From Oopsacas minuta (Eukaryota; Animalia; Porifera): a stretch of 64,000 bases of DNA. The stretch is taken from assembly GCA_024704765.1 (NCBI GenBank), contig JAKMXF010000210.1, forward strand, positions 1 to 64,000. Reading direction: 5' to 3'. The notes beneath the pieces were generated by a model. That model ran no database searches. It saw only the letters and a list, made by a program, of their open reading frames with translations, and had not been told where the DNA came from. Positions 3,452 to 44,194 of this stretch are shown here, one piece after another; position 1 is the first letter of the stretch; each line of letters starts with the position of its first letter. Position numbers and translations under genes: made by a program.

Positions 3452-4056
3452 CGATTTTATCAAAAAATATTAATAAATTTCTTGTCTTTATTTTGATCAA
3501 ACGAAAATACCTTGAATTGAACCACACATTACGTAGTTTACGATCACGATTTAAGTTTGTCTTGAGTAACAAATCACTGTAAACCTACTCAAGCTTTGCT
3601 GTTGTTTTTTGCTTTTAATTCTAAATTACGCATGCGAGAATATGTCCACTCGACTACTAGAATTATATACATCTGCGGATATGTTCTCTTGAAAGGGAGG
3701 AGAGTCAATACAATCGAAATCAGTTTTTACCTCCTTGCATATGCTATTTTACTCAATAATACATACAAAACAAAAATGTTTGCCTATTTTCTCGTGCATA
3801 TTGCTGGGGAACAAATCCGATTGCGACTGTACTAATTATATTTTGCTGAATATTACATACTTACCAGTTATCAATCCCTTGTAAGTTGTTTCTGATCTGA
3901 AATAGCTTCCGACAATATATAAATTCTCCTGTGTTTGTATATGCAAACATTGTAATTAAATCTAGAATTCTAGTTGATCTATATATTATTCCCAGTCGTC
4001 TACCGGTCTATTATTTCTGTTTTTAGAATAATTACAATTTTTGAAAAATAATTTAC

Positions 4057-16005: not shown

Positions 16006-17393
16006 CAGTCTGTCAACTTGAAATTGGGAAGATCTTTTTCGATGTTAGAATGTTCCTAATTGCATTTTCAAATTGGTTATCGTAATAATATTGATAGTTT
16101 GTGTTTTTCAACTATTTCTAGTCATTTCTTAACCAACTGAACTTCTCTAGCTGACTGCGGTTACAAAATATTTCAATTTATACTTAGTTACTAATCAAAT
16201 ATTCTATATAAATATTTATCACTTGAATTTCTCGCAACACTTCTATTTCTTCGCTAATAATTCTTTACTTTCATCAATTCAAAACCTTAAAATGAACGAG
16301 CAAGAACAGCGTAACAATATCAAGATACTTTTCGACACAGGAATCACGAATTGTATGGAATTATCTCGAAGAACTGGAGTTCCAAAAAGTACAGTTTAAC
16401 GCACTGTTTACAAATTGAGGAATGCTGAATCCGTTGATAGAAAGATTGGTTCCGGGAAACAGCGTCAGATCAAAGCAAATAACGCTAGATCACTTGTTAG
16501 TTTGGCAATCAACAATCCTAGGTTATCTGTGAGGAAGTTGACTTGCAAATTTAACAAAAGGCGGGGTCTATTGTTCTCACACGAGGCTGTAAGGATTGAG
16601 ATGAAGCGGCGTGGCTTCACCCGCAAGGTTGCTAGAAAGATTCCGATGCTTACACAAATCCATAAGGCTTATCGTGTCGATTGGGCTAAGTCTAACAGAT
16701 GTAGAGATTGGGAGAAAGTGATATTTAGCGATGAGATGTCCATTTGGCTAGCTGGTGGCAGAGTATGTGTCTGGTGTAAAGGTGATTCGAAACCAGTAAA
16801 ACCCAGTACGAAACACTCTCCTAAATTGCATGTTTGGGGAGCGTTTTCAGCATGTGGAACGTTTCCTATCAAGGTTTTCAGAGAAAATCTCACCGGGAGA
16901 CTTTACTGCGACATTCTGCACGAATGTTTAGTAGAACAAGCAAGTGTCTTGTACCCTGATAGATGGGTTTTCCAGGAAGACAACGATCCCAAACACACGT
17001 GCAACCTTGCTAAAGGATACATGGAGGAGAAAGGGATACATAGGATGGATTGGCCTGCTTGTAGTCCGGATTTGAATCCGATCGAGAACCTCTGGCCGTG
17101 GATCAAGAGAGAAATCGATTTGAAGTCACCACGAAATTTAAATGAGCTGGAAAGGGAGCTAAATGAAGTATGGAATTCTTTAGAACATGAATTTTTACGT
17201 CCATTTTGGTCATCGATGCCAAAAAGAGTCAAATTAGTACGGAAAAGTAACGGAAATAAGATAAATTATTAGGCCTACTATATTATTATTGATTGTTTAA
17301 GGATTCTAATAACATATTTAGAATAGAAATACACTAAATGTACTTGTAGCTAGGGAAAAACAAAGATCTTCCCAATTTCAAGTTGACAGACTG
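16006..17393 (+). mobile_element. Complete Tc1/mariner (DD34E) DNA transposon, 1388 bp
   Basis: Perfect 32-bp TIRs CAGTCTGTCAACTTGAAATTGGGAAGATCTTT (16006-16037 and inverted 17362-17393), with TA duplication at 16004-16005 and 17394-17395. Confidence 0.97.
16292..17272 (+). pseudogene. Tc1 transposase (326 codons) with one premature stop in the HTH
   Basis: ATG 16292 MNEQEQRNN...SRRTGVPKSTV*RTVYKLRNAES, with TAA at 16397-16399 in frame with ORF 16415-17272. Catalytic IFSDE, FQEDNDPKH and SPDLNPIENLW, with 34 residues between the second D and the E. Confidence 0.92.
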
Positions 17394-17618: not shown

Positions 17619-20600
17619 ATGCGTTTATTCTTACTGACCTGTGTAATTGTTTTCTGCTTCATTCAACTTGGTAAGTTATATTTTGAAATACAATACAAAT
17701 AAATAAAAAACTTCATATTATCTCTTCCCCAGTTGGATCTCAAGTTCAAACTCTATGTCGCTTCAATAAAGAAAGTCTACCCTCTTTTCTGCAGGAGGGA
17801 GATGAGGCTGTATATGCAGTCGATCTACAAACCCAGCCCCCTACTGGTGTGAATGTTAGTATAATCCTAACTCCAATGGATAGTAGAGTTACTTTTAGAA
17901 CTGATAGTGTCCTTTCATTCAACGCTAGCAACTGGGACCAGAAACAAAGGTTCATATTATTCGGCGTGAATGACGATGATATTCTTGACAGTCCCTATCC
18001 TTCTCAAGTTTTGGTTGAATCTTATTCTAACTCTCTCAACTTCTCCACGTTTGAGGGAGGGACGTTCCCTAATGCTAATATAACACTCCTATTGCAGGAC
18101 TCTGATAGAGGTAGAGATTTCTCGTTTGAAAACGAATTATTATTTATTCATATTTTCAAGATTCTAGGATGATTTTAATAAATGGGGGTGGAAGAAAATC
18201 TAGAAATTTATAAGAGGTCCCGTTTATCCGGACCCCTATGGTACCTTCTTAATCGTATCCAATTATCCATCCCTGGCAATGCAGGTGGCTTCAGTAAAAA
18301 ATTAGAGTGAAATGATTGAATATCATTTTTTACTTCAAAAATTTTTATTCATCATCAGCCAATTTTCTGCACTTGTGGAAAATTATGAAATTATTTCTTC
18401 AATACCCAATTTATGGTTCTTTTAAATCATAATCACTAACTAGTCAGCTGTTGCTGTCTGACCACCTGTGCTCTGATAATTTAATATACTCTCTTATAGC
18501 TGGAGCTGATGTTACAATTGAAGATGATTCGGGCTCTTCTGCTATCCCAGAAGGTAGATTCTCAATATATCAGATACAGATACCTAGTATTCCCAGAGCT
18601 AATGTTACTCTACAGCTGTCTCCAGTACAACCAACAATATACCTGTCAGAATACACTTTCATTTTCCATGCTGGCAACTGGAATATTTCACAAGTTTGTA
18701 ATATCTTTATTTATGAATATTCTTGTGAATTATTAGCTTATTCTATATATTTTCTCTATTAGGCTTTTGCTGTATTCTCTGTGGACGATGAGGTTAACCA
18801 GGGCTTGACATTCCAGTCTAATATAAGCTTTACATTCACATCAGCTGATCCTTACTACTCAGGTCTAGTAGTAGATGAATTTCCTGTCCTGATAGAAGAT
18901 AATGATGAAGATAGTGCAGTGCTGACAGGTGTCATTACCTGGATACAATCAGATGACAGGTATTATTTAACCGTGTTCTAGTAATATACGTATATACAAT
19001 ATACTCCGCTAAGTACAGCTACTAGTTGACTGCTAGATTTCTCACTACCCCGTTGACGGACAGACGGACGTAGCACCTCATCCATACCATTAGGGCATCT
19101 CCCTATAGGAGCTGCACTAAAAATATCCGGTTCTACCTGCTTAATCGGGTCAATTTCCGGTCTCGATGTGACCCTATTAACCCTAAATCTACTATATCTT
19201 ATTAGATATGGAACAGAAATAACCCTATCACTCAGTCTAGACAGATATTACTTCCCATCAGCAACACAGGGTGATATAGTGTTACTAGAAGGAGCTAAGC
19301 TAGACTTTGGAGATGGATCTAGTATTGGTCCTAACATAGAGCTAAATGTTACTAAACTCTACTCTACCAATCTTCTAGCTAGTTTGACTATTTCTCAACG
19401 TTACAGCTCAGCATGTAATCTGGATGGTACTCCTTGGAGTATTCAATTCTCTTATTGTTGTAGAAGTAAGGATTTGATTGTTAATGGATTTACTACGTAA
19501 GTTTATCTGCGTTTATTCAGACTGTCTGTGGTTTAATTTGCCTATGATTCCAATAGGATAATACTTGAATCAGAAGTTAATCTAGCAGAACACAGTTCCT
19601 CTATGATCCCTCTATTCTCTCCTCTCTACGTCAGAAGTAATTCATCAACACTTCAGTACATGTATCTACCTGTAATTTCATCTAACGGACATCCTATGCA
19701 ATTCTCTCTTCCATTCTCACAGGCTTATATCTCATCTCAGGCTGGAGCTCCATCTTGGATTAAGATAGATGAAAACACTGGGCTAATTACATTTAATACT
19801 GCATATCTACCGGTTTCTACTGGATCAACTTGTTTCCTTGTTGATGTATTAGATGTAGTAGCTGATTTAAAGGTAAAATGATTTAACTATGCTAGTTAGT
19901 GTTACACATTAATTTACTAATCTCAAATATTATAGACTACTTTTCAACTCTGTCAACATATGATTAATGAGTATATACCGTCTCCTGTTCTGTTGAATTA
20001 TAACTTTACGAATGCTATCACAACTCCTAGAGTGTATTATGGAGTAGGAGAGACAGTAGAATTGGAGTTTGTAGTTACATCTCAGCTATCTCTTACTATT
20101 GAGCCGATTAATCCTCCAACTAGTGCTAACTATGCTAGTATTAATTCTAATACTCTATATACAGGTTAGTTTGTGTTCATTTTGTGAGATTATGTACATG
20201 AAGATGATACATAACGCTACATAACGCTACATATAATGCTTGAGTGGGTATCGCACTAACACCGTATGTTTCCACTTATTTATGATAGACTTGGCCCGTC
20301 ACTAATGATGGTTACATGAGCTTAATTATGGCTGTATTCTATTTAATATTTGATAATTATCACATATCTATTCAATCGTACAGTTGATTAGCTATTCATA
20401 CGTCTAATTTAAAACAATGCGCTGGAAATTTATATTAGTAATGAGTATGTATATTCTTTTCATGATCCTCCTTCTTCTACTGTACACCCTCGCTAATCCA
20501 AACAGTACTGTACCAATTGCAAAATAAATCTTTCTGATTAGTGTATTGCATTGAAACAATACTATAGGATCTAAGAATACATTTTTCGATATTGTACAAC

Positions 20601-23600: not shown

Positions 23601-26600
23601 AGCAGAGATATATTGAGCAGGATGGACGTTCTAAACATCTCACTGGACAGCTGATACACCTGAGAGAACAATGTCAGGTGCAGCCTAAAAATGCTGAAAT
23701 AGATCCAGAACTGGAAGATGGAATTCTGAAATCTAAAATACTCCTAGAAATATTCGCGGCTTTAGCGCTTGATATTCAGGAAGAAGAACAAAAAGCTGCT
23801 GAGGTACCAGAAATTCCACCTAGCCCTCCCCAACCAGCACATATAATACCTCCACCACAGCCACGACTAATTAGACGAGAGTCACTAGACACATGGAGAT
23901 GTCTCCATTGCTGTCTAGACAATCCCGTTGCCAATAAGATATGTCAAGTATGCTATAGAACACATGATGCTCAAGTTGGTCTAGAAGTAAATCGAATTTG
24001 CAATAATTGTAGATCTCCCAATAATTCGACAGACGTTGCCTGTAACAACTGCAACATTCCTTTGTAGCGTTATTATTTTATTTTTTGTTTGTAGTATAAA
24101 CGCTTTGTTCTAAAATAACTATTTACGTATTAAAATTATTTTTATTTGTTCCAAAGTGAAATAAAGTATTCTAATTTTTTAAATTCAAGTATTGAGTCCA
24201 ATCATTTATTCTGCTTAATTAATCTGGTTAAAATGGCATGATCCCGAAGTGTCCCTATTAAGCAGAGTATATGGTATACATTTACTAATTTATAGTACAA
24301 TGTTTAGAATAATTAATCTAATTCAATATGGAATTCGAAAATCATTTTCAAAAACAAATTCTCCGCAGAAAATAGTACAGATGGATCCTCCTATCTCACT
24401 TTCAAAGTCCAAAGTTCCTAAAATCACACTCGAGGACACTCTACATAACATGGGTATCAGACCTAAGCCACAACCTAAGAATCACACGTTTAAATTGCTG
24501 ATTGTGTATTTTGTAGCATTTCTATCCATGGTTTATTATGTCAGGGATATGGCGCCTAGCACAGAGAATGCATCTCGCATTTACATGGAGTTGGAAGAGG
24601 AAGCTAGAAGGAAGGCAGAAAAAGAAGAAAAGGATAATTCTTAGTTATAAAAGTGTTGCTCTGTTTATTCACTTATTAAATGTTCATCGGCTAATTTGAC
24701 AGTTTTGCATTTTATGATTGGAGATTACTACACCAACTTCGTCTCTCAGTTTTGAAATCGTTACCCATGTTTGTATACATGTTTGTGTAAGTAATTTATC
24801 CATAAGTTATATTAAGATATCTATTCTTTAGATTTGCTACTATTCCAATGGACACTGACGTCACAAGAAAGTGGAGAGTATCCTATTTGTTTCCACACCC
24901 TCCTTTCTGATCTTTATTCTTCTCTCCCATACTGTGTTATTATATCAGTATTGGAGGTGCCAGGAAGAAAGGTGAATATATAAGGCCATAATATATTATA
25001 TATCGGCGGTATGATTCCTTATAAGGCACTAAATCAAAGAGTATATGATATCTATTTATCAATACATATCTACCTAGGTCCCAGCTGTCCAGTTGGTCCA
25101 ATCTCTCAACTACACAAGCGGTTATGACAGTGAAGTCACGTTACCCTCTCTCGCCCTCTCAGGAGAGCTAAGTACAGCGGAGCATGCGTTTGTAATGATT
25201 GGAGGGAAGATTGATGCAGGAGAGAGTTTATCTTTTACGAGTGGAGCTCTAAATACACTTGATGTAAAGTCAATTAGTTCTTCTCTCCTTCTTATTACTG
25301 GAGAAGATTCTCTATCTGTGTATTCTCAGGCGCTTGCTAGTGTTAGTTATAGGAACGAGGAGCAGAGATCAACTAGTGGCACAAGGTAACCATATTAGAT
25401 ATTTCGATATTGTACAAGTATTTTATGTATTATGTAGCTGTTTATTTGGCCATTTGAAGCTTACTTTTCGATACTTTACCCTTTTTGGCGAATCAGTTTA
25501 ACATTTTTAATCTAAGTCTTTGAATAAAGACGTATTACGTATAATACGTATTATACGTTCCATCTAGAATTTTGGGTGACGTAACTTCTATTAGGCTGAT
25601 TTCTGCAATAAATATTTTGCATCAAAACAGTAGTTATCGAATTATTAATGAGAAATCTCAGCATAGTTGACCAAATTATATAATACTTGATAATAATGGA
25701 CTATACAAGTCTAACAATGTTCAAATCTTGTATTTCTAGACGTATAATCGTTAAAATAGATCACGTATAACGTATTATTAGGGCCGTAGCCACTGGTCAG
25801 GTTGGTCAAGTTAGCATGGTCAATCAGTCAGGTTGGTTAGGTTAACCTGACCACTTTTATTTTGGTGGCTACGGCCCTGAATTATACGTTTAACACATAT
25901 TATACAACTTAGTTTTGAATATTTAAATTCTAAATAACACTTTTCTTTTAAATTTCTTTGATTCTTATAATTTTCTGAAAGTATCTAAAACTTCTTTGCT
26001 TTTTTGACCCATTATACGTGTTCTGAGCACGACTAAGACATATTTGTTCGTTCCGCTCCAGCTGATATATTATTGATTATATTCTAACATTTATATACTT
26101 CCTCACACATTCTTACTATTATTCTCAGATATCTGATATTTGGTATTTTTGATGGAACCTACTTGAACAACCTGGCTCTTCAATATTTCAGATTAACAGT
26201 GAGCATTCTTAACAAGCCTCCTACTATTTCTCTCAGTGGAGATACTCTCCCTTATGAACAAAGATTTGTAGCTAATCCTATTTATATTTCTCACAACACA
26301 CAATCTACTCTCTCTGATCCTGATTCAGTCGGCATACATAATGCTACGATAAGCATCTCTCCTCTGTTGGATTTTGGGGTTGAGACCCTGACGAGTAGCT
26401 TCACATCTCCGGGACTTGTTTCTATGCCAATAATAGTACAAGAGATCGCTATAGATATCCCATTTGGCTATTCTCAATCAGGAGAATTACATTCTCACAT
26501 AACACACAATTTGTACGTGAATGATTCAAGCAGTTTAACTGTTGGAGACTTAGATATTGTAGTGTATATAGACCATTCATGGATAGGAGACATCACACTT

Positions 26601-29600
26601 GAGTTAGAACATGATGGTTTAAGACGTACTCTTGTAACACAGCCTGGAGGAGCACTGTGTTCACAAGATAATTTGTTCCATGTAGTGTTTGATGAAGAGG
26701 CTGACGTCTCGTTAGGTAAGACCAGTTCTTCACCTGGGGTGTGTGCATTCAGGTCACAAGGAGTGTATCAGCCTGAAGAAAGTTTAACTGCCTTTTCAGG
26801 ATCTAATATCAACGGAGTATGGACACTCCATGTAATCGATGATGTACCAGCTACACACAATGGTAAGCTAGTAGGATGGGGTATTGTAATACAACCTGAG
26901 GAAAATGTATTCATATCTACTCCTCACTCAATTATTCCTCCACTCTTATTGACTCGTATTCTATCTCCTTACCAATCTGTATCACTCAATATCAACAGTC
27001 CTGGTCGTATCATAAACTTGATCCCTCGTATACAAATATCCCAGCCTTATGAGAGGGGTCTACTGTACCTCCCTCAATTGGTCCTGACACATCCAGACGG
27101 TACACAGGTACAGCTGAGTGATGAGACATATCTCCCATGTATTAACGGTAACTATACGTATATTGTATTCAGTGATACAGCAGCTTTCACTGTGTATAGT
27201 CAATGTGTTTCTACCAATACAACTAATAGCTCTATTACACCTGATATACCTGTATCAAATAGTAAAGATACAATGATAGATATGTTAAGACCTGTCACTA
27301 GTCTGTCAACACTGGTAGGTAGGCGATCAGGAGGGGAATGGTTACTCACTGCTTGGGTGTCACGTGACACTCGAATACACTTGTTAGGATGGTCAATGTA
27401 TATTTCCACAGAGCCAAATATTGATACTAATTATGATACGTTAACTGGTGTATTCACATTGGCAGGATTTGATTCTACAGAAAACTATCTAACCATTTTA
27501 CGTAGCATTCAATACAATAATACATCTCCTTCTCCTACTTTCTGGATAGGCAGAACAGTAGAAACTCTGTTATTTGATGGAGAGACAAATTCTTTAGCTA
27601 TTCCATCATCTCGTACGAATATTGTACTACATCATATTGTTATAGATCTAGACCCGTTTAATGTTACCACAGCACTGCATCCTGGTTATAGCACTAGTTT
27701 CATAGAGCATTCTGTTTCTACACCTATCGTAGATTCAGGCGTTCTGTTAAGAGACGGATATTTGTCTGTTGGATTATATCGCTTAGAGTTTGTAGTTGAT
27801 ATTCAGAATGATATGAATGAGTTTATATCTGTTCGAATATCAAACTCTACTAATATACTCACTACATCAAATTACGATTTATCTAGAAATGAGTATCTTC
27901 TCTCTGTGTATAATCAAGCAGTGCTATATCCCATCTCTGTATTTCAAACTATACTCAGGTCTGCTACGTATTCTAATACAGCTGATGAGTTGATTGGTAC
28001 AAACCGTACTGTTACTATTAGAATATATGAGACTAGTACTGGCATAGCTTATCCCAGTCTAGAGGCTAGCACATATATTGAACTCGTGCATACAAATGAT
28101 GCACCAGTTTTAATACTCAACTCTGAATTCGGAGCATTTGGAGATATCTCTAATTTCGTTAGTTACACAGAAGGTCAGGGTACTCTCCAGCTAGCTAAAG
28201 CAGATACTATAATACTCTATGATAATGATCATGGAAATTTACAACAGATTGTTATAATCATAACCAATCCGATTGATCTCTTACATGAGAGTCTGTTAAT
28301 CAACGAATCATTACCCAATGGTGTTAATTCTACGTATAATACAGATACATATACTCTGATTATTCACGGTAATGCTAGTATTGATAACTATATATTGGCT
28401 ATTAGCCTTATAAGGTATCAACATCTATTGCATCCAGGGCGACCTGATACTACACCTAGATTGATATCTTTCACACCCTTTGACGGACACAGATACGGCA
28501 TTACGACAAATGCATATGTCTCGTTTGCATCAGTTAATGATCCTCCGTTGATTATTGGAAATGTATACACAACATCGTTCAGAGAAGAGATGGATCCAGT
28601 TCCTATCATATTTGAGGGTACTAAACTATTTGATATTGATAACGATTCACTTCAATACATAGAGATTAGTATTATAAATCGTATAGACGGTGCTAATGAG
28701 TTTATCTATGTAAATCCAGCAACCACGACAGAGACAATATCCAATAATGAAATCCAATACATTACCTACACTCCAACACTAACTTACCCTTATAATGATA
28801 ATGCTACGGTGATTATAACTGGATTGAAAACTATAGCAGAATATGAGTTAGTATTACATACAGCTAGATACGATAATACAGCTGATGAGCCTCAGATTGA
28901 TACAAGGAATATTTCTATTGCTATATCAGATGGATTAGATATAACTTATGGGAATACTTTAGTAATGATTGTACTAGTTAATGATTCCCCGAGATTAGCT
29001 CAAGGTACCATACCTTTTGTCGCATATGGTAACGAGGATCAGATTGACCTAGGAATTTCAGTATTTGAAACTAGCTATCTATTTGAGGATGATGATCTTG
29101 GAGATGATAAAGGTATTGGCATCATATATGCAGATTGTGATCATGGGAGATGGCAGGTGAGAGGTAGTATGTTAAACTGTGATCATACTGTTACTAATAC
29201 CTCAGTGAATGGCTCTAGTAGCTGTGCATTGGATTGGCTGGATATACCTTGTAATCTCACTGTTGATAATTCATTCTTAATTAGATTTAAAGCAAATACA
29301 AGACTGAGATTTATTCCTGACCTTAATTTCTATGGTAATTCGTCTGTAACGGTAGTTGCATGGGATGGGACAGATGAGCAAGTTGATGTTCTGATTAAAA
29401 GCGCAGTATCAACTTCTGAAATTGACGCGTTTAGTCCTGAACAGACAACTTTAACATTTATAATTCTACCAATTAACGATGCACCAGTTCTTATACCAAT
29501 ACCTCTGGTTATGCCTTCTATGCAAGAAGATGATTTTTCATCAGTCGGTGTGTCAGTATCAACATTAGTTATTAACGCTTCTGACGTAGATAGTGATTCT

Positions 29601-32600: not shown

Positions 32601-35600
32601 AAGTTATGGGATCTAACCACCCCCGAATTAAGCGGTACTCCTAATATCAATACATTGACTGATCCTGTAATAGGACCCTATAGCATAAACACAGCTACAG
32701 CTACAGTCATAATAGAGGCAGTCAATGATTCACCATTGATAACACCTAGATTAATTTTATCTCCAATCAATGAAAATATAGATACGTCTATTAATGTCGG
32801 TATTCCAGTCAGTACTGTTATAGATCAGCATTTCTCTGACGTAGATAATAACTTTCAATCTGGACTTGCTGTTGTTGGGGTTGATCACAGGTATGGAGAA
32901 TTTGAGTATTCCTGTGTGACAACTGGTACATTTTGGCGCCCGTTTCTAGGAGATATAGCTTATGGTGAAATTGCCCCTAGACTGCCATTCCCGTCGAAAG
33001 CAACTCTACTATCTGACAGCTGTAGAATCAGGTTTAGACCTAATACAGATTTTAATACTCAATTTGACTTGGAGGGTGTTAGTTGGGCAGAAGATATAGT
33101 GCCCTATCTCTCTGTGAAGGCTTGGGATCAAACTAGTGGGATAGCAGGGGATTATGGGGTGGATACTACTTCTAATCCTGATGATATCACCAACTCATTC
33201 TCAGCTAACACTGTTAATATTACCATAACAGTGATTTCAGTTAATAGACCACCTGTTATATACTTACAAACAGCTGATAATTCATTTCAAACATTCTTTA
33301 CAGAACCTTCACCTCCACTCCGTACTGTTTATCCTTCTTATCTAGTCGATACAGATTCTGTTTCCATTACAGACTCAGATCACATACATCTACAATTACT
33401 TAGGGTTACGTTAACTAGACTTGATGGTTTCTCAGAAACTATTCTCTATGACTTGTCTATGACAAATCTAAATGCTTCAGTCTTAGCGGATGATGTAAAT
33501 ACTTTCACTATTGAATTTAGCTCTTCTGACACACAATATCCAGCACTACTGAGTTACTATGTAATGCTATTGAAATCTCTACGTTACCAGAATATTATTG
33601 AAGAACCGGAAGCCACAGACCGTACAATCTCATTTCTATTGGTAGACCCAGAATCTAGTTCAAGCTCAGCTCTTACAACTATTTTCATACAGCTTGTTAA
33701 TGATCCACCTGAATTGGATTTAGATAACACAACTGCGAATCTTAACTCTTATGTATCTTACACTGAAGGGCAAGGAGAGTTTTTCTTCCTCAATTCCAGT
33801 AGACTATCTCTTATAGACTATGATTCCAACTATCTTCAAAATGCTACGATCACTCTCTTGAACCCTATAGACGGTGTTTACGAGGTTCTACGAGCTACAA
33901 GCACACTGAATATTAACGTAACCTATTCTAATCATAGACTAGTGTTAACGGGCCCTGCCCCTGTAGCAGAGTTCATTAGTGTATTACTCACAACATCATA
34001 TGAGCATACTAACAGTAGTCCTGGCAACCCTAACACTAAGACTCGGCAGGTGTTATTCTCAGTGGCAGATGACAGTGACAGGAGTATATCAGCTGTCACT
34101 TACATATCATTTAGTTCAGAAAATGATGCGCCTATACTGGATCTCAATGGAAATCAACCCGGAGAGGATTATAGTACAGTATTCTATGAGCAACAAGGCT
34201 CTATCCGTATCCTATCAGCTGACAGATTGCTGCTTATGGATATTGATAATTCCACTCTTGAAAAGATTACTGTTAAACTGTTCAGCCCAACAGCTGATGA
34301 CTTTCTCTTTGTAGACAATGTTACTCTGTATAGTGATAACCCTAAAATAGCGAAAATTGTAATACTTACTAATCTACGTTCTAGACAGCAATTCAACGTA
34401 TCTACTGGGGAATTAGTTATAACAGGACTAGATTATGTACACGAATATGAAACAGTATTGAAAACACTACGTTATGATAATTCAGCTGACGAGACTGGTA
34501 GCTTTGTTAAGACATTGTCAGTTATTGCAAGTGATGGTCTTCTCGACTCAAACGAAGCCTTCATTTATATCAATGTTACTCCAGTCAACGACGCTCCTAC
34601 CATTAATCTGAATATTTCTGTGATCAGGACTGTGATAGAAGAAGACATACTAGATAGTATTAATATTGGTGTCTCCATTTCTAGCATAATAGACCCTATC
34701 TTCAGTGATGTGGATTCTGTCACACAACCTGGTTTAGCTATCGTAGCCGCTGATACCAGTATTGGGTATTGGGAGTATATAGTGATACCCAATAATATAT
34801 TAAGCAATTCTTCTAATTCATCGATTCCCTTTACTGTCCCTTCAAATTCTACTTGGATTCAATTCCCTACAGTAGTTAGTCCTGAGTATGTTCTTCTATT
34901 GAAAGCTGATGGTGAGTATACTCGAGTTAGATTCGTGCCAGGAAATGATTACAACGGAGGAACTAGTATTTCATTTGTTGCATGGGATGGTTCTGACTCG
35001 TTCTCTTCAGGGCAGATAGTGTCATTGACTAATTCTGATCCACAGACTGGTGCATTCAGTACTGAGGATACTCTAATGTTTATTGATATAACACCAGTTA
35101 ATGATGCCCCTGTTCTCGAAACTATTCCATCTCCAACATTTTCTATTAGAGAAGGTGAGTATAATTCATTCGGGATATCAGTGTTTGAGTTAGTGAGTCG
35201 TGTTACAGATGTAGATACTAATAGTCAACAGGAATTTGGTTTAGCTGTGGTTATGAATGATAACTCAAATGGAACATGGGAGTACACTACTACAGGAGGT
35301 ATAGACTGGGACATAGTTGAATCTACAACTCCATCCATTGCGCTATTACTAAGTTCTACTCATGATGGGTATAGGATAAGATTTGTTCCTGATTTGAATT
35401 TCTATGGTGAGAGGGAATTGAGTTATCTAGCCTGGGATCTAACTTCTGGTGGTGAGTCTGGTACTTATGCTTCCACCATCAGATCTGATCCAATAACTAG
35501 CCCATTCAGTTCTTCAGTTGCTACGCTAATTCTCACAATTGAGTCTGTCAATGATTCACCTTATTTTGATGGCAACAGCTTGCTAGATATCGTCATAGAA

Positions 35601-38600
35601 GATATGATAAATTTTGGTACTGCTGTTTCTGATATTGTGAGAGATTCATTTAGAGATATTGATGACGGATACCAAGTAGGCATAGCGGTAACTAACGTAG
35701 ACAATCGTTACGGTAAATGGGAGTGGCGATGTGATGATTTGCAGGATTGGCAGGATTTCATTGGAGACATTGTATTTGGAGTCCGTACACCATTCTATCC
35801 AATTCCTCTACGAGCTACTCTATTAGCTGGAGAGTGTACCATCCGATTCCTTCCTAACCTTAACTTTAATACAGAAAAGTACACCACTGGTCTACCACGT
35901 CCCTCAAATGACTTGCCATACATCTCAATACTAGCTTGGGATCTGACAACTGGAATATCCGGTACATACGGGGTAGACACTACATACCATAATTCTAGTG
36001 ACACGAATGAGTTCAGTCATTTCCCTTCTACTGCATACATCCATGTGATGTCAGTTAACGATCTTCCATCAGTACAGATATCTCAACAGGGAGTAACCTA
36101 TAGTACTATATTCAGAGAAGATGGTGGTATTGTAGCTATCGTAGAGCCAGCACAGGTATTTATAACTGATGCAGATCATAGCACGTTAGAATCAATAGAG
36201 ATTATTCTAGAACAAGTCTATGATGACGGCTATGAGAATATCTCATTGAGTCCAAACCCAGGAGTAGTTAAGATTGGAGATGAGGTATATGTTAATACAA
36301 CTGTCAATAATACGGAGAGATTAATTGTCACCTCAGGACAAATTGGTGATGTTTATCAATTTGTCCTCTCTAACCCAAATCCCTGGGAGAGAGGATCAGT
36401 TGCCGCCTACCAAACTGTAATACGTACTTTAGTTTATAATAATTATAATTCTGAACCGACTAATATGACAAGATTTATCAGATTCTATGTATCTGACGGG
36501 GAAGAAGTGAATAGCTATGCTTTAACTACCATATATGTAGAATTGATTGTTGAAAATATTCCAGTATTAAATTTGGGAATTTCTCAAATTACACTTACAG
36601 AAGATTTTATAGAATCTCGATCTATTGTATCCCAGAACCTGACTCTCACTGATATTGATCATAATGAATTCTTTTACATTATTTCCGCCAATATTTTCTT
36701 CGATCAAACACCAGAATCAATCCTTGAATATATTTCTATATCTTTGCCTTATACACCATGTAACATGAACAACAATACATTTTCTCCTAATATGAATCAG
36801 TCTAATTGTACTACATCTCCTCTAATATCTAGTTACGACCCAATACAAGGTAGGATTTCTATTAATGGACCTGCTTCCCTTGACGTGTACAGAGACACCT
36901 TGAAAACTGTTGTATACACGAACAGGATTGGTGAGCCGATTGATTTGGAGAAGATTATTATTTTCGAGGTTTTCGATACTAACAACTTAAAAAGCGATCC
37001 CGTATCTGTTCGTATTACAATTGAATTACGCAATGATCAGCCTCCTATCCTCACAGCTGGTGGCCTATATCAATACATTGAGCAGCAGCCTACTAATGCT
37101 TACTCCTTGTTTATTGGTGATAACATAACATACACAGATGCGGACAGTGGAAATGAACAACAGTACAGTGTAAGTATATCAATTACCAATCCTAGTGATG
37201 TCCCATATGAAATTCTATCTGCTAATCCTCCTTCAGCTAGCATAACAGTAGAGTATCATACACTAGATGTGATATACATGACAACTCAATTGGTGGAGAT
37301 ATGTACTAATGTTACTGACAATTCTACTACATCAACTGTGATAGATACTACTGGTAACACTACTACTCCTAGTAATATAACTACAAATATGATTGGGAAT
37401 AATACTAATACAACATCCTCTCCAACTACGCTACCTATTACCCCAGCACCTGTAGTGTTAAGATGTGAGAATGTGAGTGGGACTGTAAACATGACTAACA
37501 AAACAACAATATACACAGGACTTAATTTAGTAGGCCCTGCTTATATTTCAGAATTCTTAGAAGCTCTAACTACAGTAACGTATAGTAATGGAGCAGAAGA
37601 ACCTACTCCCACACCCAGAAGGGTGACCTTCCAGGCTAATGACATGAATCTGACTAGCAACCAAGCAGAGATTACTATCAGAATTTTGCTTACAAATGAT
37701 CTCCCTGTTGTTGATTTGAATGGGTTTATGATAGGAACACGTTTCATGGTTACGTTTGAAGAAGGTTCAGAACCTGTTCCTATTGTAGATTCATTGTCTA
37801 TGAGTATTTCTGATAACGATCATACAGGCTTAATTGGTGCTACAATTACTCTAAATACGATATATGATAAAGATATGGAAATATTATCTGTAAATACATT
37901 AGGGAGTAACTTGCTAGCTAACTACAACATGACTACTGGTATTCTATCTATTAGTGGTAATGCTAGTATTGAGACTTATCAGTCTGTTTTAAGAACTCTG
38001 ACTTATGTGAATCTAGATGCAGGACCTGGTGCTCCTAACCCACACATGAGAGAGATTACTGTCATTGTCTCAGACCCTGTAGACAGCTCAGTTCCTGCTT
38101 ACAGTGTCGTGACCTTCTTGTCTGTTAACGACCCTCCTTTCCTGGATCTGAATGGTAACTTGATAGGTGAGAATGCTACTGCTAATTTTATAGAGGAGGG
38201 AGAGAGAGTTAGAGTATTTTCTCCTGATGCTGTTATCATGGATGTAGACAATGGAACTCTTGCTAGTTTAGATATCTCAATTAACAATCCAGTTGATGGA
38301 GAATCAGAACGTATATTTATAAATCCAGATATTTACACATTGCTTAACCCCATGGGATCTATTCAGATTACAAACCATTCTATTGTATTGACAAACTTCC
38401 TTTCTACTAACAAATACATTATGGCTCTACAGAGCATATACTATGTGAATACATTGGATGAGCCTTCGTATGATACACGTTATGTCAGTGTAGTAGCTTC
38501 AGATGGTCTGTTGACTAATGCATTGAGTTATGTTGGTAGTATCACGATTCAACCTGTTAACGATCTTCCTCAATTCAGTTTCAATGCAGACCCAAATTCA

Positions 38601-41600
38601 TACGCTACATTCGAGGTTGTATACCAAGAGGATACAAACTCTATTCCTGTTGTTAATGTTGTGAGTACAGATTTCATTTTGATAGATGATGATGATCCTT
38701 TTCTGACAAGAATTATTATAGAGAGAAGTCCTGCGCCCGATGGAGATTATGAAAAGTTATTTTTCTTATCTTCAAATCCTATTCCTGGTCTCGGACACAC
38801 ATATCCACAGTGTCCTCTCCAATCGATTAGCAACCCACTCACTCTAGACATAACGGTATCTCTCACGTTAGAGGAATGGAGAACTGCACTCAGCACATTG
38901 AGTTATTGTAACATGGACCCCAACTCATTCGGTGGAGTACGTCAGGTTAAGATTGTGTTAGTAGACAGCAAGGGTGGTAGATCAGCTGTTCGCTACTCTA
39001 ATATAAACGTAATACCTATAAACGATCCCCCTCTGTTCACTGGTACTCCTCCTCTCGTTACGACAGATGAAGACAATTCTGTACAAATACAAGTATTGAG
39101 TAATTTCACTGATTATGAAGAAGTACTTACAGGTACTGCTATAGAAATAGTTACACAACCAGCTCGAGGTATTGTACAGGTTATCCAGCCTAGTGGGGTA
39201 ATACAGTATACTCCTGCATTGAATGATAATGGTATTGTAACGTTACAGTTTAGAGCATGTGATTCAGAAGCTAACTGTTCTCTGCCTATTACAGCTACTA
39301 TTATGATAACACCTATAAATGATCCTCCTACACCTGTTGGTAGTAATTTAATAGCAGTTGAAGAGGATGGAGAAGTACAAGTTAACCTACTGGACTATTT
39401 CACCGATGTTGAAGACACGCCAACTACTAATAACACTCGTGTTGTTGTGACACCTAGAGGGGGTAATTGGGAGTACAACATGGAGCAGGAAATATTTTTT
39501 TATTCTCCTAATCTGAACAGAATTGTAGATGATTCACTTGAATTTGAAGGTTGTGATAATGATGGATTGTGCATCAATATCACTCTCACTTTCAAAATTA
39601 CTCCGATTAATGATCTACCAATTATTACTATTAACTATCCAAACTTTATCTTTCCGGCAATGACAAATGAAGATACTCCTGTCAATATAAGTGTATCTAT
39701 TGAGGATGTAGAGGATAATGATGAGCTTGAAATACAAGTATTATCTGTAGAGAATGGAGGAGTTCGTGTATTCACATTATCTACAGTGATTCAACAAACT
39801 AACGTGTTTTTACAACTGATACACGTAGAGTATACACCTAATTCAAACTTCTATGGAGATGAAAGTATTGTGTTCTCTGCAACAGATAACGAGGGTGGAG
39901 TGAGTACACAAACTTTATTAATGAGGGTAATGTATATTAATGACCCTCCTACTATAGAGAATACTGTCATAACACTTGATGAGGATACAGCAATAGATTT
40001 GACTCTACCACAAGGACTCGGTATTTCTGATAGTGAATCTGTAATTACGTCACAGCAGATTGAGCTACTAACTGACCCAGACACTGTATTAGGAGATCTC
40101 TCATATAACAGTGATAATGGAATCCTATCTTACTCCCCATTGCCTAACTTCCATACAGATTCTATTGATTTTACTATTAGAGTTTGTGATACAGATACCG
40201 TAGATGAAATTCAGTGCTCAGAATTTGATATTACCATAATGATTAATTCAATTAATGATCCTCCTATTTTCATACCTTTCATCTTCTTCATTCGTGAAGA
40301 TTCATCAAACACTACTAATATACTTCCATACCTCAGAGATGTTGAAGATGTTACCTTGTCACCAGCTCGAATTAGCCTTACAGGACCTGCGCCATTCTTT
40401 GGAACAGCTGATTACAATACGGATACTGGTGATGTCATGTACACACCCGGTGATGATTTCTTTGGACAAGATTTCATCGATTTGAGGGTTTGTGACAGCA
40501 ACAATTTATGTAGCTCTATTCAACTAGAAGTATATGTTATTGGTGTGAATGACGCGCCTATGGCCGATGGACTTAGACATTTTAGTCCAGAGGATAGAAT
40601 AGATCTTGTTAATATTGCCACTATTGTAAGAGATGTTGATACGATACAGGACGTTCAGGCTATCCAATTGAGGATATCTATTGTAGAGATTGTTGATGGT
40701 AACATTACGCTAGTTGACGAGGGAGTTACAAATAAGAGTGGGGATATTCGAGTGTTCCAAGATGAAGGAGTTATATCTTACGAACCTCCGCCCAATTTCA
40801 TTGGTTATGACAAGTTTAAATTTGCAGTGTGTGATCACTGTGATGAGTCTAGAAATCCTGAATTAGGACGTACAACTCTAGAAGATATAGAGTGTCTTAA
40901 CCAAATAGAAGAGAATAATGGACAGAGTATTGATCCTCTTACAGGCTTGAGTATAGCCTGTTCTGTTGGTACTATTACTATTGTTGTTGTGAATAATAAT
41001 GATGTTCCTTTGTTGAGAGATATTTCTGCTGTCACAAACATAAACGAAGAAGTAGTTCTTGATCCTTTCGGGTCACAACTACTCTTCGATGATATGGATT
41101 TATTCGTATATGATGAAGACGATAGTCAAGCTGCGTATGCTCTATCTCAAGGATTTGATTTGAATGAACTTGTTCTATCCAATAGCAGCAATATCGATAC
41201 AGGAGTAATTGGAATACTGAGCTCGCCTATAGGAGGGAATGCAGTAATCTCAGGCACAGATAGAGTCTACATGACATACACCCCATTCAATAACTTTATA
41301 GGTTATGACGAATTCTTGTATGAAGTATGTGATATCTCTCCTATATCAGCATGTGGTAATGCTATCGCTAGGGTATTCGTGTCTAGTTCAGGGCCTCATA
41401 TCGATATGCTAGTTGTCTCTGGTTCTCAAGATCTCCCTGACTCTAAAGTATCAAGGGGAGACACGATAACAATTTCATTCTCTGAGCCTACTAATCAACC
41501 TCCTCAAGAAGGGAAAGATAGCATGGAAAAATTCTGCGGATCAGCTGTTGATCAAGTTATTACCTTCGACTCCCCCTTTATAGACTCTACAATATTCCCT

Positions 41601-44194
41601 AATGCATATTGTGCCAGATGGGATGACCCAACTACCCTTATAGTCTCGATAATAGACCGCGGGTACCCTGAACCTGATCCGAAAATCGGTCAATGGATAG
41701 TGAGTGTTACGCAAGATCCTTCTAGAATTTGTTCTGGGTTTGATTCGAACCATCAACGTTTCGATGAAAACGGAGTAAATACGAATTGTTTATTCAATGC
41801 TGATTCTACCTCAGCACACTCTATTTCCAGTTCCCCTCCAGCTACTGGAGATTGGGGCTTGATCTTACCTAGAGTTCTTAATGCGATTATTCAGAACATT
41901 AACATAAGGGGAGATGGGACTCTTGCCTCACTATCTCAGTCAATTCAACCAGGAACTTCAATTAAAATTCATTTAAGTGAACCATTCTCTTCCTCACAAT
42001 TATTACTATACTGTCAAATACCAATAAGCGATTTACTGAACTTTCAAATTTTATTCGCTGGAACTAGAATGACTCTACAAGCATGTTCCAATCTATTGGC
42101 TGATGGTAGTAACGCAGATCAAGTGTACAATGAAAGGGATCCTTCCTCTCTATCCTCGCTGGGTTTCCCAATGTTGTCTGAGCTTATCTTCGAGGTAATT
42201 TCATTGGACCCAAGATTAATAGAAGAAACTCAAAATTCTAATCAAATGCTGTCAAGGTTCCTGCAAGCAGTACGTCAGGCACCAATTGCAAAGGTAGTTG
42301 AAGAAACATTAAATGTCAAAATAGATGTTCCACCCGATGCAGTCGTAGGACAGATAGGAACTATCAATCCTATCACAGAAAATGTAGACGTTAACACACC
42401 AACTGTCATAAGCGCTGTAGCTTCAGATCCTGATAATTTCGATAATGTATATTCCAACTTTGACGTAATAAGGATTACATTTTCTGTTGCTACTAATGAA
42501 CCAGCTGTTGGGAGTAAGGATGACATGGATAAGATATTTATATTCACTCCAACTTTAGGTGTAAACTATTTGGGTGCTTGGGAGACCAGTAGTATTCTTC
42601 TAGTTATAATAATTGATTCATCTCGTCCTGAAGTGAATGGAACTGAACCGACTATAGCTAATCTAATGCTGGAGTTTTTACCGAATTATCTTAACAATGA
42701 GACTATAGTCCTTTCCTCTAGTATAACGTCAGACAAATTTCATTGTATCGGGGATAATGTGTGCTCTACCTCTTCAACAGCTATTACAATAGGTGTGTGT
42801 GATTCAACCAAGACTTCTTGTAGAGCAAATACTCCATTCACAGCATTTTCTGGGGATTTTGGTACTGCTACTGGAGTAGCTGATAACCCTATTGGAATAA
42901 TTGCTGGTACTTCTGTGGCAGTTATAATAGTGATTGTTGTCCTTGCTGTGATTATTCTTTTGCTTCTATTGTACTATTGCTACAAACGTGTACAGGAAAA
43001 GAGAGACAGAGACAAGGCTCTCGCTCTTGTTCGTAGTTGGAAGCAGAAACAGAAGGCACACAGTGAACAACAGAAGAAAACTTCTATGTTGGGAGTTGAT
43101 GAATCTTGGAAGAGTCCTTCTACCATGCCTCTTATGAGAGGAAACGTAGATCCCTTCTCTTCCACAGCTCCTAAACTCAGTATGGGGAGTGGAGCCTTTA
43201 TATCTCCTACTCCTTATGAACCTTTCCAACCCAGGGCGTATCCCTCTATCCTGGATTCTTCTCTTGGTTATCCTACTGTAGGCTCTGCTCTACCACCAAT
43301 TACACTCAGAACCGTAAGTTACTTTTTAGTTTACATTCAGTCAAATTCGGATAAGACACACTCCATTGGGAAACATAAATTTGTACGTACTCACTACCGT
43401 ATTATCCGAGTGTACGTCTTACTCATATAACAACATATTAGGGGTTCTACATACGAATGTCAACAAACTATTTCCAGTTTGATCACAATTTCTAATACGT
43501 ATTGAAATGAAATGAATATCGTTTGAGTCAGATTTTCAGGATTGACCACGTACATACTTACTTAATTTATTAAATGTAATTATGTTTTATTTACTTTTTA
43601 TATCTCCAGCCTCAACCAGATGGCTTCATGCTACCCGCGGTCTCTCCTGCTCCTCTCTCAATCCCACCTGTCATAGGCCCCATTCGTCCTGCCCCTGGCT
43701 TGCCTCCTATCAAACCACCAGCTACAATGCGATCCCAGTTCCCTATGGAGGGTTCCAAGCCCGGACCAATCCCAGGCATGTTAATTCCGTCCCGTCTTCC
43801 TACGATGGACCAAACTCCTACCTCTCTTCCACCACTGGTACAACCGAAATCCAAATTCCCCGACCTCGGGAAACGGCACATACGGAGCTCTGATGTCCTC
43901 ACCACTACAACAACAGAAGGTACCACTACTGAGACGACTGAGGGGTCTACAGAGAGTGTATCAGGATCAAGTGTTCCTCCCCCCAAAACTATTGGACTTG
44001 GAATGCCCTCTCGAAAGACTGGGGTAGACCCTTACTCATCTAAACCACTCAGTCCTATTCCAGGTTTGGGAATGAGAGCCTTTGATGTTACCCCAATCCT
44101 GGCTACTCCTCTGATACCTACCAGTCCTCAGAAGCCTCCGACTAAGCCAACTGATCAAGATGATGAGGGACCGACCTCAGAAACTACTGAATAG
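17619..44194 (+). CDS. Giant (~6,624 aa) type I transmembrane adhesion-like glycoprotein, 11 exons
   Basis: Exons 17619-17670, 17733-18110, 18500-18693, 18763-18959, 19206-19496, 19557-19872, 19936-20164, 24832-24971, 25078-25385, 26129-43313, 43610-44194. All introns are GT-AG, phases 1,1,0,2,2,0,1,0,2,0 match, total 19,875 nt. Signal peptide MRLFLLTCVIVFCFIQL; TM IIAGTSVAVIIVIVVLAVIILLLLLYYCY (~42897-42978). The exon 8 donor could alternatively be 24956/57. Confidence 0.8.
19055..19123 (+). mobile_element. Possible Helentron/HINE-like relic in intron 4 of the giant gene
   Basis: GACGGACAGACGGACG micro-repeat followed by the imperfect palindrome CTCCCTATAGGAG and CACTAAAAA, an arrangement resembling HINE 3' ends. 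Confidence 0.3.
21074..22372 (+). CDS. Cytochrome P450 (CYP26/CYP120-like), 432 aa, no N-terminal TM anchor, nested in intron 7 of the giant gene
   Basis: PGKFGFPLLGD start, GPIFKTRI, ExxR (EVQR), PERW, heme motif FGGGERTCLG. In-frame stop at 21017-21019 with no ATG between it and 21074. Confidence 0.92.
   Translation: MNIPGKFGFPLLGDQSISFVQDPIGFVNNQVKLYGPIFKTRIINKPFVFVTSQSGVREILEEKSDCFERNYEAFLAGLFEMNIAFVDGPAYTRIHELVKPGFSSDMLRKYREDISRITLQFLSELDSSAPFDLYQTMKQVITEICIFLFIGIERNDPVYLRTKELLIEHWHGLISIPLPIRVPLLFSSGYDKAMLAKEQLISLLRHRLAEPCELRRGVLSAVDVSMFESVDEAANNFLLFVTAVIPKAITSLLVSCCLQMYSPENKHILDASGDERYFDAVLKEVQRLFPPFLGGWRNVRANVVINGFEIPKDYGVVYMAYHVHRDPLIFPEADKFIPERWLCEETREAKLWTFGGGERTCLGKHLSQMIISECVVALRNNFVCEIVPGQNLTYKWLPVSRPVNGVMVAMKRYINIVDRPLITSEKVNSEKD
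22620..22734 (-). mobile_element. Short MITE relic related to the element at 25780-25878
   Basis: Reverse complement of 22700-22734 CATGGCCGTAGGAGATGGTCCGGTTGGTCAAATT resembles TAGGGCCGTAGCCACTGGTCAGGTTGGTCAAGTT. Confidence 0.4.
23060..24067 (+). CDS. RING + TRAF/Sina-type zinc finger + coiled coil + two RanBP2/NZF-like zinc fingers, 335 aa, nested in intron 7
   Basis: C3HC4 RING CMCC..SCGHSVCRTC..SCFIC; CPFVATCEWMG...HFSIC; C-terminal WRCLHCCLDNPVANKICQVC and CNNCRSPNNSTDVACNNC; no MATH domain. Confidence 0.85.
   Translation: MAQKGIEAGKRYPDLDVFSMLILVKGPKGELGGFTPRFFIQKITERCMCCYGVPRSPYSASCGHSVCRTCLFNFVLTSHNPSCFICQTPMLKEECYPDLPLSRRVNQLEIRCPFVATCEWMGLVEHLRTHFSICAGVNGLFRSWMESIQAFLSNLQNRSSLLERRVDQLEMQIRKHQGICQQRYIEQDGRSKHLTGQLIHLREQCQVQPKNAEIDPELEDGILKSKILLEIFAALALDIQEEEQKAAEVPEIPPSPPQPAHIIPPPQPRLIRRESLDTWRCLHCCLDNPVANKICQVCYRTHDAQVGLEVNRICNNCRSPNNSTDVACNNCNIPL
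24300..24644 (+). CDS. Small single-pass membrane protein (114 aa), possibly mitochondrial, nested in intron 7
   Basis: ATG 24300; basic, acid-free N-terminus MFRIINLIQYGIRKSFSK; hydrophobic LLIVYFVAFLSMVYYV; charged helical tail ELEEEARRKAEKEEK. Confidence 0.6.
   Translation: MFRIINLIQYGIRKSFSKTNSPQKIVQMDPPISLSKSKVPKITLEDTLHNMGIRPKPQPKNHTFKLLIVYFVAFLSMVYYVRDMAPSTENASRIYMELEEEARRKAEKEEKDNS
25537..25558. repeat. Perfect 22-bp palindrome ACGTATAATACGTATTATACGT in intron 9
   Basis: The sequence equals its own reverse complement; half-sites recur at ~25740, ~25763 and ~25882. Confidence 0.85.
25780..25878. mobile_element. ~100-bp MITE with 14-bp TIRs (hAT-like ends) in intron 9
   Basis: AGGGCCGTAGCCAC (25780-25793) and GTGGCTACGGCCCT (25865-25878) are perfect inverted repeats; internal GGTCAGGTTGG motifs; ATTAT occurs on both flanks. 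Confidence 0.7.
26129..43313 (+). CDS. Exon 10 of the giant gene (17,185 bp): P domains, ~32 xNDxP-linked repeats, RGD region, TM helix, start of cytoplasmic tail
   Basis: Uninterrupted ORF (track 26163-43430). Acceptor TTCTCAG at 26128 and donor ACC|GTAAGT at 43313/43314. P domain: IDHSWIGDITLEL...FSGSNINGVWTLHVID. Repeats end VNDAP/VNDSP/INDPP. Confidence 0.93.

Follow-up and report, generated by a model that had tools for sequence, protein, structure and literature searches.

A giant membrane-anchored sponge protein whose closest studied relatives are the Dictyostelium Sib adhesion receptors

The Sib receptors of Dictyostelium, whose NPxY motifs bind talin, function in phagocytosis and in adhesion to the substrate (PMC2651865; PMC7982419; PMC9453864), and a 2022 review placed Sib repeats, among eukaryotes, only in Dictyostelium (PMC9453864). 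Here, we describe a gene of the glass sponge Oopsacas minuta at positions 17619-44194 of the forward strand of the window, by which we mean the whole 64,000-nucleotide stretch of contig JAKMXF010000210.1 that was analysed. The locus is a single 11-exon gene for a type I membrane glycoprotein of 6,624 amino acids, and its closest studied relative is the Sib receptor. We estimate a probability of about 0.6 that the product acts as a long Ca2+-stiffened adhesion or particle-capture receptor. Sib receptors are the only characterised proteins that join a SIBA-E_N domain, adhesin-type repeats and a single transmembrane helix; at the level of domain families and fold, the sponge family is a counter-example to the view that such repeats are confined to Dictyostelium. 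Giant cadherin-like surface proteins are already known as a kind, but this gene and its family are undescribed, and a literature search found no paper describing the gene or its orthologues.

Like the Sib receptors, the sponge protein has type I topology, a probable N-terminal SIBA-E_N domain (PF24907), repeats of the bacterial-adhesin type, a cysteine-rich stalk near the membrane, a single transmembrane helix and a cytosolic tail. A predicted structure of three consecutive repeats (A-A-B, of the types defined below) matched SibB 761-1108 and SibA 1222-1570 with E-values of 1e-9 to 1e-8. The sponge protein differs in being about 3.5 times longer, in carrying ~30 repeats rather than the 4 of Sib, and in having two P domains and a distinct juxtamembrane module. 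Pfam detected no VWA domain in any exon or in the N-termini of the orthologues, and the 306-residue tail contained no NPxY motif (NP.[YF]); because both features are missing, we have not filed the protein as a member of the Sib family. The pairing of SIBA-E_N with adhesin-type repeats is a testable link to the Sib receptors, which reviews treat as amoebozoan-specific.

The open reading frame (ORF) listing of the window contains a 5755-residue ORF (26163-43430); the stop-to-stop frame around it spans 26088-43430 and 5780 codons. A preliminary description of this stretch, prepared from the DNA letters, had proposed that scattered 5' ORFs, exons at 24.8-25.4 kb, the giant ORF and a proline-rich ORF are spliced in one frame to encode ~6,600 amino acids. 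As proposed, the rebuilt chain of 11 exons had GT..AG boundaries at all ten introns, matched phases throughout, no internal stop codons and a product of 6,624 residues, with the anticipated signal-like hydrophobic N-terminus, one transmembrane helix and a 306-residue tail (17% proline). GC content was 0.30-0.41 and even over the gene and its flanks. The exons are as follows.

17619-17670, + strand: exon 1, start codon and hydrophobic start of the signal peptide, MRLFLLTCVIVFCFIQL, with a phase 1 GTAAGT donor (read from sequence)
17733-18110, + strand: exon 2, end of the signal peptide and N-terminal unit 1 (~110 amino acids)
18500-18693, + strand: exon 3, first part of N-terminal unit 2
18763-18959, + strand: exon 4, rest of N-terminal unit 2, split from exon 3 by a 69-nucleotide intron
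19206-19496, + strand: exon 5, probable SIBA-E_N domain, containing FSYCCR
19557-19872, + strand: exon 6, conserved extracellular region, together with exon 7
19936-20164, + strand: exon 7, conserved extracellular region, together with exon 6
20165-24831, + strand: intron 7, 4,667 nucleotides, GT..AG, containing nested same-strand genes
24832-24971, + strand: exon 8, with transcript joints at both edges (run X4, below)
25078-25385, + strand: exon 9, the bulk of the first A-type unit, whose end is encoded at the start of exon 10
26129-43313, + strand: exon 10, one coding exon of 17,185 nucleotides and 5,728 codons
43610-44194, + strand: exon 11, proline-rich distal part of the tail, including a second DPY motif, and the stop codon

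Transcript evidence came from four sequencing runs (X1-X4) of one sample, all of which contain the stretch and were compared over 19950-25949. Coverage in X1-X3 was even, unbroken and DNA-like. X4, by contrast, varied widely in depth (14 to 900) and yielded contigs in which exons are joined, and thus behaves as a transcriptome, the sole RNA-like run among the four. One X4 contig of 4,915 nucleotides contained the joints 20164|24832 (4,667 nucleotides skipped, GT..AG) and 24971|25078 (GT..AG) and then left the genomic sequence at 25385 to continue into ATATCTGATATTTGG..., the letters with which exon 10 opens at 26129. This transcript-like contig therefore links exons 7, 8, 9 and 10 across the 4.67-kb intron. 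Depth in X4 dropped from ~179 to ~37 at 20164, where one contig terminated exactly, and the k-mer depth of that contig in exon 7 (165.6) divided into a spliced branch (160.1) and an unspliced branch (13.9). We infer that k=31 unitigs would branch in this way where most transcripts use the splice donor.

Orthologous loci were reached through the small exon 2 ORFs, as a search of European Nucleotide Archive (ENA) assemblies with exon 2 returned three ORFs that were 73-75% identical. In four loci (L003-L006), the order is Zwilch, exon 2, a P450 gene, a zinc-finger ORF, small ORFs and the giant ORF, exons 7 and 8 being separated by the P450 and zinc-finger genes in every case. By tblastn, exons 2-9 were collinear in these loci at 62-85% amino-acid identity (71-74% for exon 2, 65-80% for exons 3-4 and 80-85% for exon 8), with exon 9 cut by the end of the locus in L006. 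L005 and L006 have a counterpart of exon 1 at 53-61 nucleotides upstream of exon 2, likewise short, hydrophobic and followed by a GTAAGT donor. Exon 10 orthologues were 60-71% identical over their full length, and exon 11 was 74% identical in a further locus (L002), where its GTAAGT donor is conserved. A metagenome contig from the demosponge Aplysina aerophoba (MKWU01006653; PMC5099237) contains an orthologue of the giant ORF and, upstream of it, weaker collinear matches to both N-terminal units and to exons 5, 6 and 9; in demosponge-type orthologues, the exon 9 unit continues unbroken into the giant ORF.

The giant frame is 100% identical to a GenBank hypothetical protein of O. minuta, LOD99_2290 (P0001; 6,399 amino acids), but this GenBank model is chimeric and wrong in two places. 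Its start is the nested zinc-finger ORF (23060-23974), and exons 1-7, including the signal peptide, are thereby missing. It also drops 23 residues, NASIDNYILAISLIRYQHLLHPG, that every hexactinellid-type orthologue retains with a gap of at most one residue. The junction 43313|43610, which is GT..AG and in phase, is identical in the GenBank model and in ours. Our model corrects the public one by separating a misfused nested zinc-finger gene, adding seven real 5' exons that had been omitted and restoring 23 conserved residues that had been excised.

Most of the ectodomain is a stalk of repeats, for which the preliminary description had counted ~32 xNDxP-linked units. We found 27 strict xNDxP sites and, with variants, about 32-33 units, in agreement with that count.

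28092..39017, + strand: about 23 A/B units, each of 140-170 amino acids
28092..36548, + strand: super-repeat, three copies of six units in the order A-A-B-B-B'-A, with a period of 926-951 (~940) amino acids
39018..41123, + strand: about 7 'tandem-95' repeats of ~100 amino acids each, Big_9 / Cadherin_5 (Pfam Big_9 E 8e-41, 5 stretches)

A-type units have the pattern NDxP...E..G...DxD...Y..vL..l.Y.N..eP...R....DG and B-type units the pattern NDxP...DxD..GiAv...G.WqY..W...lL....RiRF.P...F.G...AWD. In a self-BLAST comparison, offsets of 920-949 residues predominated, at 30-40% identity. In A and B units alike, positions N2, D3, P5, E24, D41, D43 and D126 show little or no variation, and these NDxP, DxD, E and D linker positions suggest, by analogy with cadherins, unit junctions that may be stiffened by Ca2+. 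Big_9 (139 bits against a cut-off of 23.6), Cadherin_5 (75 bits against 26.5) and Cadherin_4 (60.6 bits against 25.1) scored above the Pfam thresholds; B units match all three families, A-type units match no Pfam family, and profiles of the two unit types found no related solved structure by sequence. The classical cadherin family PF00028 had no match in any piece and is absent from the Pfam list of P0001, and the scanned pieces had no Pfam match to Cadherin_C, Cadherin_3, Calx-beta, LamG or VWC. Within the giant exon, Pfam gave a weak CLSTN_C match on the Y..vL..Y.N motif. Weak matches to He_PIG, RibLong and FAM163 were dropped, as they were not reproduced in orthologues.

In an AlphaFold2 (AF2) model of an A-A-B stretch (predicted local distance difference test score, pLDDT, 77), the units form three tandem beta-sandwiches, with an extra hairpin and helix in the A units. 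Foldseek matched this model to tandem extracellular cadherin (EC) arrays in the PDB (E ~1e-7). Among Swiss-Prot models, the best matches were the C-terminal region of calsyntenin, the CSPG repeats of FREM1/3 and CSPG4, Arabidopsis GEX2 and Dictyostelium SibA/B (E 5e-12 to 2e-8), with classical cadherin-1 ranking after these. Hence the earlier proposal that the repeats are of bacterial-adhesin type and not classical cadherins stood at the level of sequence families and gave way at the level of fold, where the structure search placed the units among metazoan cadherin, CSPG and calsyntenin beta-sandwiches, an outcome that the preliminary description had named as one that would count against it. 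As modelled, the stalk units are thus bacterial-type by sequence family and ordinary cadherin/CSPG-like by predicted fold.

The sponge protein shares Cadherin_4, Cadherin_5 and Big_9 repeats with bacterial tandem-95, VCBS, RTX (LapA-type) and DUF4347 adhesins, at 23-31% identity over the A/B and tandem-95 regions, but its gene has introns and its product a signal peptide, a eukaryotic transmembrane anchor and a cytoplasmic tail, and it lacks the RTX, type I secretion system (T1SS), Por and retention modules of those adhesins. With giant cadherins (FAT, CELSR, CDH23, PCDH15 and the desmosomal cadherins), it shares tandem beta-sandwiches, the NDxP/DxD/E linker positions and a single-pass anchor; it differs in having no PF00028 domain, units of 140-170 residues with the additional hairpin and helix, and no catenin-binding tail. 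Among predicted structures, the A-A-B model was closest to FRAS1/FREM, CSPG4 (NG2) and calsyntenin (E 5e-12 to 2e-9), and the calsyntenin CLSTN_C region shares the motif ...Y..vL..l.Y.N...eP.... Sequence identity in these fold alignments was only 9-17%, however, there was no Cadherin_3, Calx-beta or LamG match, and the remaining domains differ.

The distal head begins with two N-terminal units of one ~110-residue type, with the pattern PEG...F..NW...Q....DD....D.D. Unit 1 aligned with units of the Aplysina locus, of P0261 and of amphioxus, and these form a conserved ~110-residue family. The preliminary description had called these units Calx-beta-like; units with F..NW...Q...DD do exist, but Calx-beta identity lacked sequence support from Pfam or the PDB. 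Six N-terminal units gave no Pfam match to Calx-beta (PF03160) at E<=1, and a profile of nine such units found no Calx-beta chain or other related solved structure in the PDB by sequence. The resemblance to Calx-beta and LapA is a lead from a language model and stays unconfirmed. Sponge aggregation factors are a secreted proteoglycan with Calx-beta and Wreath domains; the Oopsacas protein differs in being membrane-anchored and in having no Calx-beta match.

The FSYCCR-containing domain reported earlier is present in exon 5, and our analysis adds its probable identity as SIBA-E_N. Pfam SIBA-E_N scored 19.6 bits in O. minuta, below the 28.1-bit cut-off, 17-20 bits in hexactinellid-type sequences (n=4), 28.4 bits in the Aplysina locus, 32.0 bits in P0170 of amphioxus and 29.2 bits in P0261; the same profile positions were matched in all seven sequences tested. 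The region encoded by exons 6-7 matched no Pfam family, the top match being He_PIG at E 0.06. Two P domains, as the preliminary description had recognised, follow in exon 10; Pfam detects the first, and profile-profile alignment to the first supports the second.

26550..26888, + strand: P domain 1, of the proprotein-convertase type, with a P_proprotein match in Pfam at E 1.4e-7 and 31.9 bits (cut-off 21 bits)
27000..27404, + strand: P domain 2, a divergent second copy that contains a variable insert, missed by Pfam

Alignment of orthologue profiles of the two P domains by hhalign gave a probability of 92.7% and an E-value of 4.3e-7 over 118 columns, and amphioxus P0170 and P0261 also have a P domain. 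As the protein has no subtilisin catalytic domain, these are stand-alone P domains and not part of a convertase. Atlas searches with the SIBA-E_N region and with the juxtamembrane module had no informative outcome.

The stalk is followed by a family-specific juxtamembrane module, the membrane anchor and the tail.

41370..42887, + strand: juxtamembrane module, ~500 amino acids, family-specific
42894..42974, + strand: transmembrane helix, GIIAGTSVAVIIVIVVLAVIILLLLLYY (read from sequence)
42975..43313, + strand: membrane-proximal cytoplasmic tail, with a conserved basic stretch and a W..P....MR.N.DPF motif in an alignment of 12 orthologues

The juxtamembrane module consists, in order, of a Big_5-like immunoglobulin (Ig) domain, a cysteine-rich loop, an alpha/beta domain, a second Ig-like domain and a cysteine-rich stalk. 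It has no Pfam match, and its AF2 model (pLDDT 79.8) gave weak fold matches to Chlamydomonas FMG1B and to S-layer Big_5-type Ig-like domains. The last Ig-like unit of the module (profile ~356-450) is tandemly repeated 28-42 times in P0146, P0147 and P0148, proteins of a Planctomycetota bacterium, the jakobid Andalucia godoyi and Mastigamoeba balamuthi; a Pfam scan of P0146 found no family. The transmembrane helix aligns with hydrophobic segments in all orthologues, and in the 12-orthologue alignment a GxxxG motif at its edge is confined to the hexactinellid group. The tail matches no Pfam family, including the catenin-binding cytoplasmic domain, and has conserved DPF/DPY motifs instead of NPxY. 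DP[FW] motifs are known ligands of the AP-2 appendage. The ectodomain has many N-x-S/T sites and the two RGD sequences reported earlier. RGD1 lies in a conserved strand and is retained in 7 of 12 orthologues, RGD2 is not conserved, and given this poor conservation we rejected these sequences as integrin ligands.

A search with the whole protein found five proteins 60-71% identical and six 36-40% identical, followed by the bacterial tandem-95, VCBS, RTX and DUF4347 giants at 23-31%. As the preliminary description had anticipated, the best matches beyond Holozoa were giant bacterial adhesins. These bacterial proteins match residues ~1100-5800 only, most widely in the tandem-95 region, and leave the head (1-1100) and the juxtamembrane/C-terminal region (5800-6624) unmatched. 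An exhaustive search with a juxtamembrane profile returned 1,024 proteins, in which about 34 clusters have the whole module once. The named orthologues listed here are collinear with the sponge protein over 1,900-2,200 residues and carry A/B units.

XP_070566489.1: orthologue in Ptychodera flava
LOC100369441: orthologue in Saccoglossus kowalevskii
28.6-kb multi-exon gene: orthologue in Branchiostoma belcheri, GCA_025402995.1 (PMC13350694)
4,977-amino-acid protein: orthologue in the choanoflagellate Salpingoeca infusionum

In amphioxus P0170 and P0261, SIBA-E_N, P domains, the N-terminal module and the repeats occur in one protein. A maximum-likelihood tree of the juxtamembrane module, rooted at its midpoint and containing several long branches, set a Salpingoeca-containing clade (100/98) apart from the rest and recovered a deuterostome clade (100/100) and an Oopsacas plus Aplysina cluster clade (95/97). 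The family tree thus appears broadly to follow the species tree, as vertical descent would predict. To judge from these sequences, the sponge gene belongs to an old family of putative giant receptors present in a choanoflagellate, sponges, hemichordates and amphioxus. The placement of this architecture 'in an early animal' was therefore too narrow, whereas the description of the protein as previously uncharacterised held, with no characterised orthologue found. With no studied member between choanoflagellates and cephalochordates, the family bears on which adhesion or prey-capture molecules predate animals. We rejected contamination or recent horizontal gene transfer (HGT) on the basis of introns, synteny, composition and the family tree. 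A 6,324-residue protein from ENA (P0021) has classical cadherin EC repeats (PF00028 and related families) plus stretches ~30% identical to A-type units; a cluster related to it (P0090) includes a protein from a Thermoanaerobaculia metagenome-assembled genome.

How might such a protein work? In the receptor model that we favour, a distal head of two ~110-residue beta-rich units, SIBA-E_N and two P (jelly-roll) domains would be displayed on a very long stalk of some 30 cadherin-like beta-sandwiches whose sequences are of bacterial type, followed by the Ig-like juxtamembrane module, the transmembrane helix and the proline-rich DPF-type tail. Ca2+ binding by the NDxP, DxD, E and D residues at unit junctions would stiffen the stalk into a rod; if each cadherin-type domain spans about 4.5 nm, its length would be of the order of 100-150 nm. 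The rod would keep the head far from the membrane, where it could bind substrate, particles, bacteria or another cell, and the tail might link binding to endocytic or cytoskeletal adaptors, in a mode broadly analogous to that of the Dictyostelium adhesion and phagocytosis receptor SibA. A bolder version, which we consider rather unlikely, makes the family the holozoan counterpart of amoebozoan Sib, a pre-metazoan receptor for substrate adhesion, particle capture or phagocytosis, with a SIBA-E_N head on adhesin-type repeats, that was inherited vertically from before the choanoflagellate-animal split, perhaps from an amorphean ancestor, and kept in the suspension feeders sampled, namely a choanoflagellate, sponges, acorn worms and amphioxus. 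If true, it would overturn the published Dictyostelium-only view of Sib-type repeats and make the protein a candidate bacterial-capture receptor of collar cells.

Several points weigh against a Sib-like receptor encoded by the full exon chain. Its function is deduced from architecture alone, and two defining Sib features, the VWA domain and the NPxY motifs, are missing. The SIBA-E_N score is under the Pfam cut-off in O. minuta and just over it in three orthologues, the fold matches of the stalk are to generic beta-sandwiches (VIA, Z 8-10), and the DPF motif is short, so that its conservation could have other causes. Direct RNA support spans exon 7 to the start of exon 10. Just 28 nucleotides of contig lie on the exon 7 side of the 20164|24832 joint, which is under the 31-nucleotide bridging rule and is what k=31 unitig overlap would give.

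Among the alternatives, the one that we take most seriously, while still thinking it unlikely, is that the stalk serves passively, as a glycocalyx or spacer, or mechanically, as a tether or filter element comparable to CDH23/PCDH15 tip links or to FMG1B, for example in links between collar microvilli, flagellar vanes or syncytial strands. The great length of the protein, its many N-x-S/T sites, the occurrence of the family in collar-cell and filter-feeding lineages and the match of the juxtamembrane module to FMG1B (PDB 9gos), itself a giant single-pass surface glycoprotein and the best solved-structure match (E 2e-7), all fit this idea. The FMG1B match is very weak, however, with a template-modelling (TM) score of 0.17 and 8% identity, so the likeness is at the level of fold only, and the conserved head (SIBA-E_N and P domains) and tail motif suggest specific binding and signalling. 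It is improbable that the repeat core was acquired from bacteria by HGT and serves, along the lines of the symbiont interaction raised in the preliminary description, a sponge-specific recognition of symbionts or bacteria. The bacterial giants that are the best matches outside Holozoa for residues ~1100-5800, and the 'bacterial' names of the matching Pfam families, are what this account would predict, but amphioxus, hemichordates and a choanoflagellate share the architecture and the family tree broadly agrees with that of the species, so that any transfer would predate animals and not be specific to sponges. In addition, GC content is like that of the rest of the window, A-type units stand beside classical EC repeats in P0021, and calsyntenin, FREM, CSPG4, plant GEX2 and Dictyostelium Sib have units that resemble those of the stalk in fold. 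Finally, few bacterial symbionts are reported for O. minuta (PMC10280926).

We regard it as very improbable that the protein is a divergent member of a named metazoan family, such as FAT/protocadherin-type cadherins, FRAS1/FREM/CSPG4 or calsyntenin. Its predicted folds do match cadherin arrays and the repeats of calsyntenin, FREM and CSPG4, and the CLSTN_C match on Y..vL..Y.N points the same way, but the absence of PF00028, Cadherin_C, Cadherin_3, Calx-beta, LamG and VWC matches, the 9-17% identity of the fold alignments and the different head and juxtamembrane modules argue against membership. Least probable in our judgement is that the upstream exons (17.6-20.2 kb) form a gene distinct from that of the giant exon and that the join between them is an artefact of transcript-contig assembly. 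The 28 nucleotides of contig 5' of the joint, the GenBank model that ignores the upstream exons and the three other genes in between would be explained in this way. Nonetheless, the joint falls exactly at independently predicted, phase-matched GT..AG sites; the depths of both contigs agree; the order of exons 2-7, nested genes and exons 8-10 is kept in four genomes; and amphioxus P0170 and P0261 have the homologous N-terminal module fused to the repeats. Moreover, the giant exon by itself encodes no signal peptide, and the GenBank alternative would join a cytosolic RING/RanBP zinc-finger ORF to an ectodomain.

Three features are nested in intron 7.

21074-22372, + strand: P450-like gene (Pfam p450, E 1e-35)
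23060-24067, + strand: RBCK1-like zinc-finger ORF
24249-24644, + strand: small conserved ORF

The nested genes had greater depth in X4 (about 340-900) than the host gene (~160). In the Aplysina locus, the corresponding exon matches are separated by less than 1 kb, which is too short for the nested genes. Upstream of the gene, a Tc1/mariner-type transposase ORF (DDE_3 and HTH_Tnp_Tc3_2) at 16400-17272 separates Zwilch (13969-15792) from exon 1; none is listed between Zwilch and exon 2 in the gene tables for L003-L005. Downstream, two tandem 350-residue PhyH (phytanoyl-CoA dioxygenase) ORFs occupy 44860-45912 and 46720-47772, and a single PhyH follows the gene in L002. Over 20683-25628, X2 and X3 both depart from the window at 18 single bases and by a 2-nucleotide deletion (at 22810), which X1 does not; these differences point to a second haplotype or individual within the sample. 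Within intron 9, depth in X1-X3 rises from ~90-210 to 1,900-3,400 over window positions 25550-25950, with many loose ends and small joints, which suggests a high-copy repeat inside this intron.

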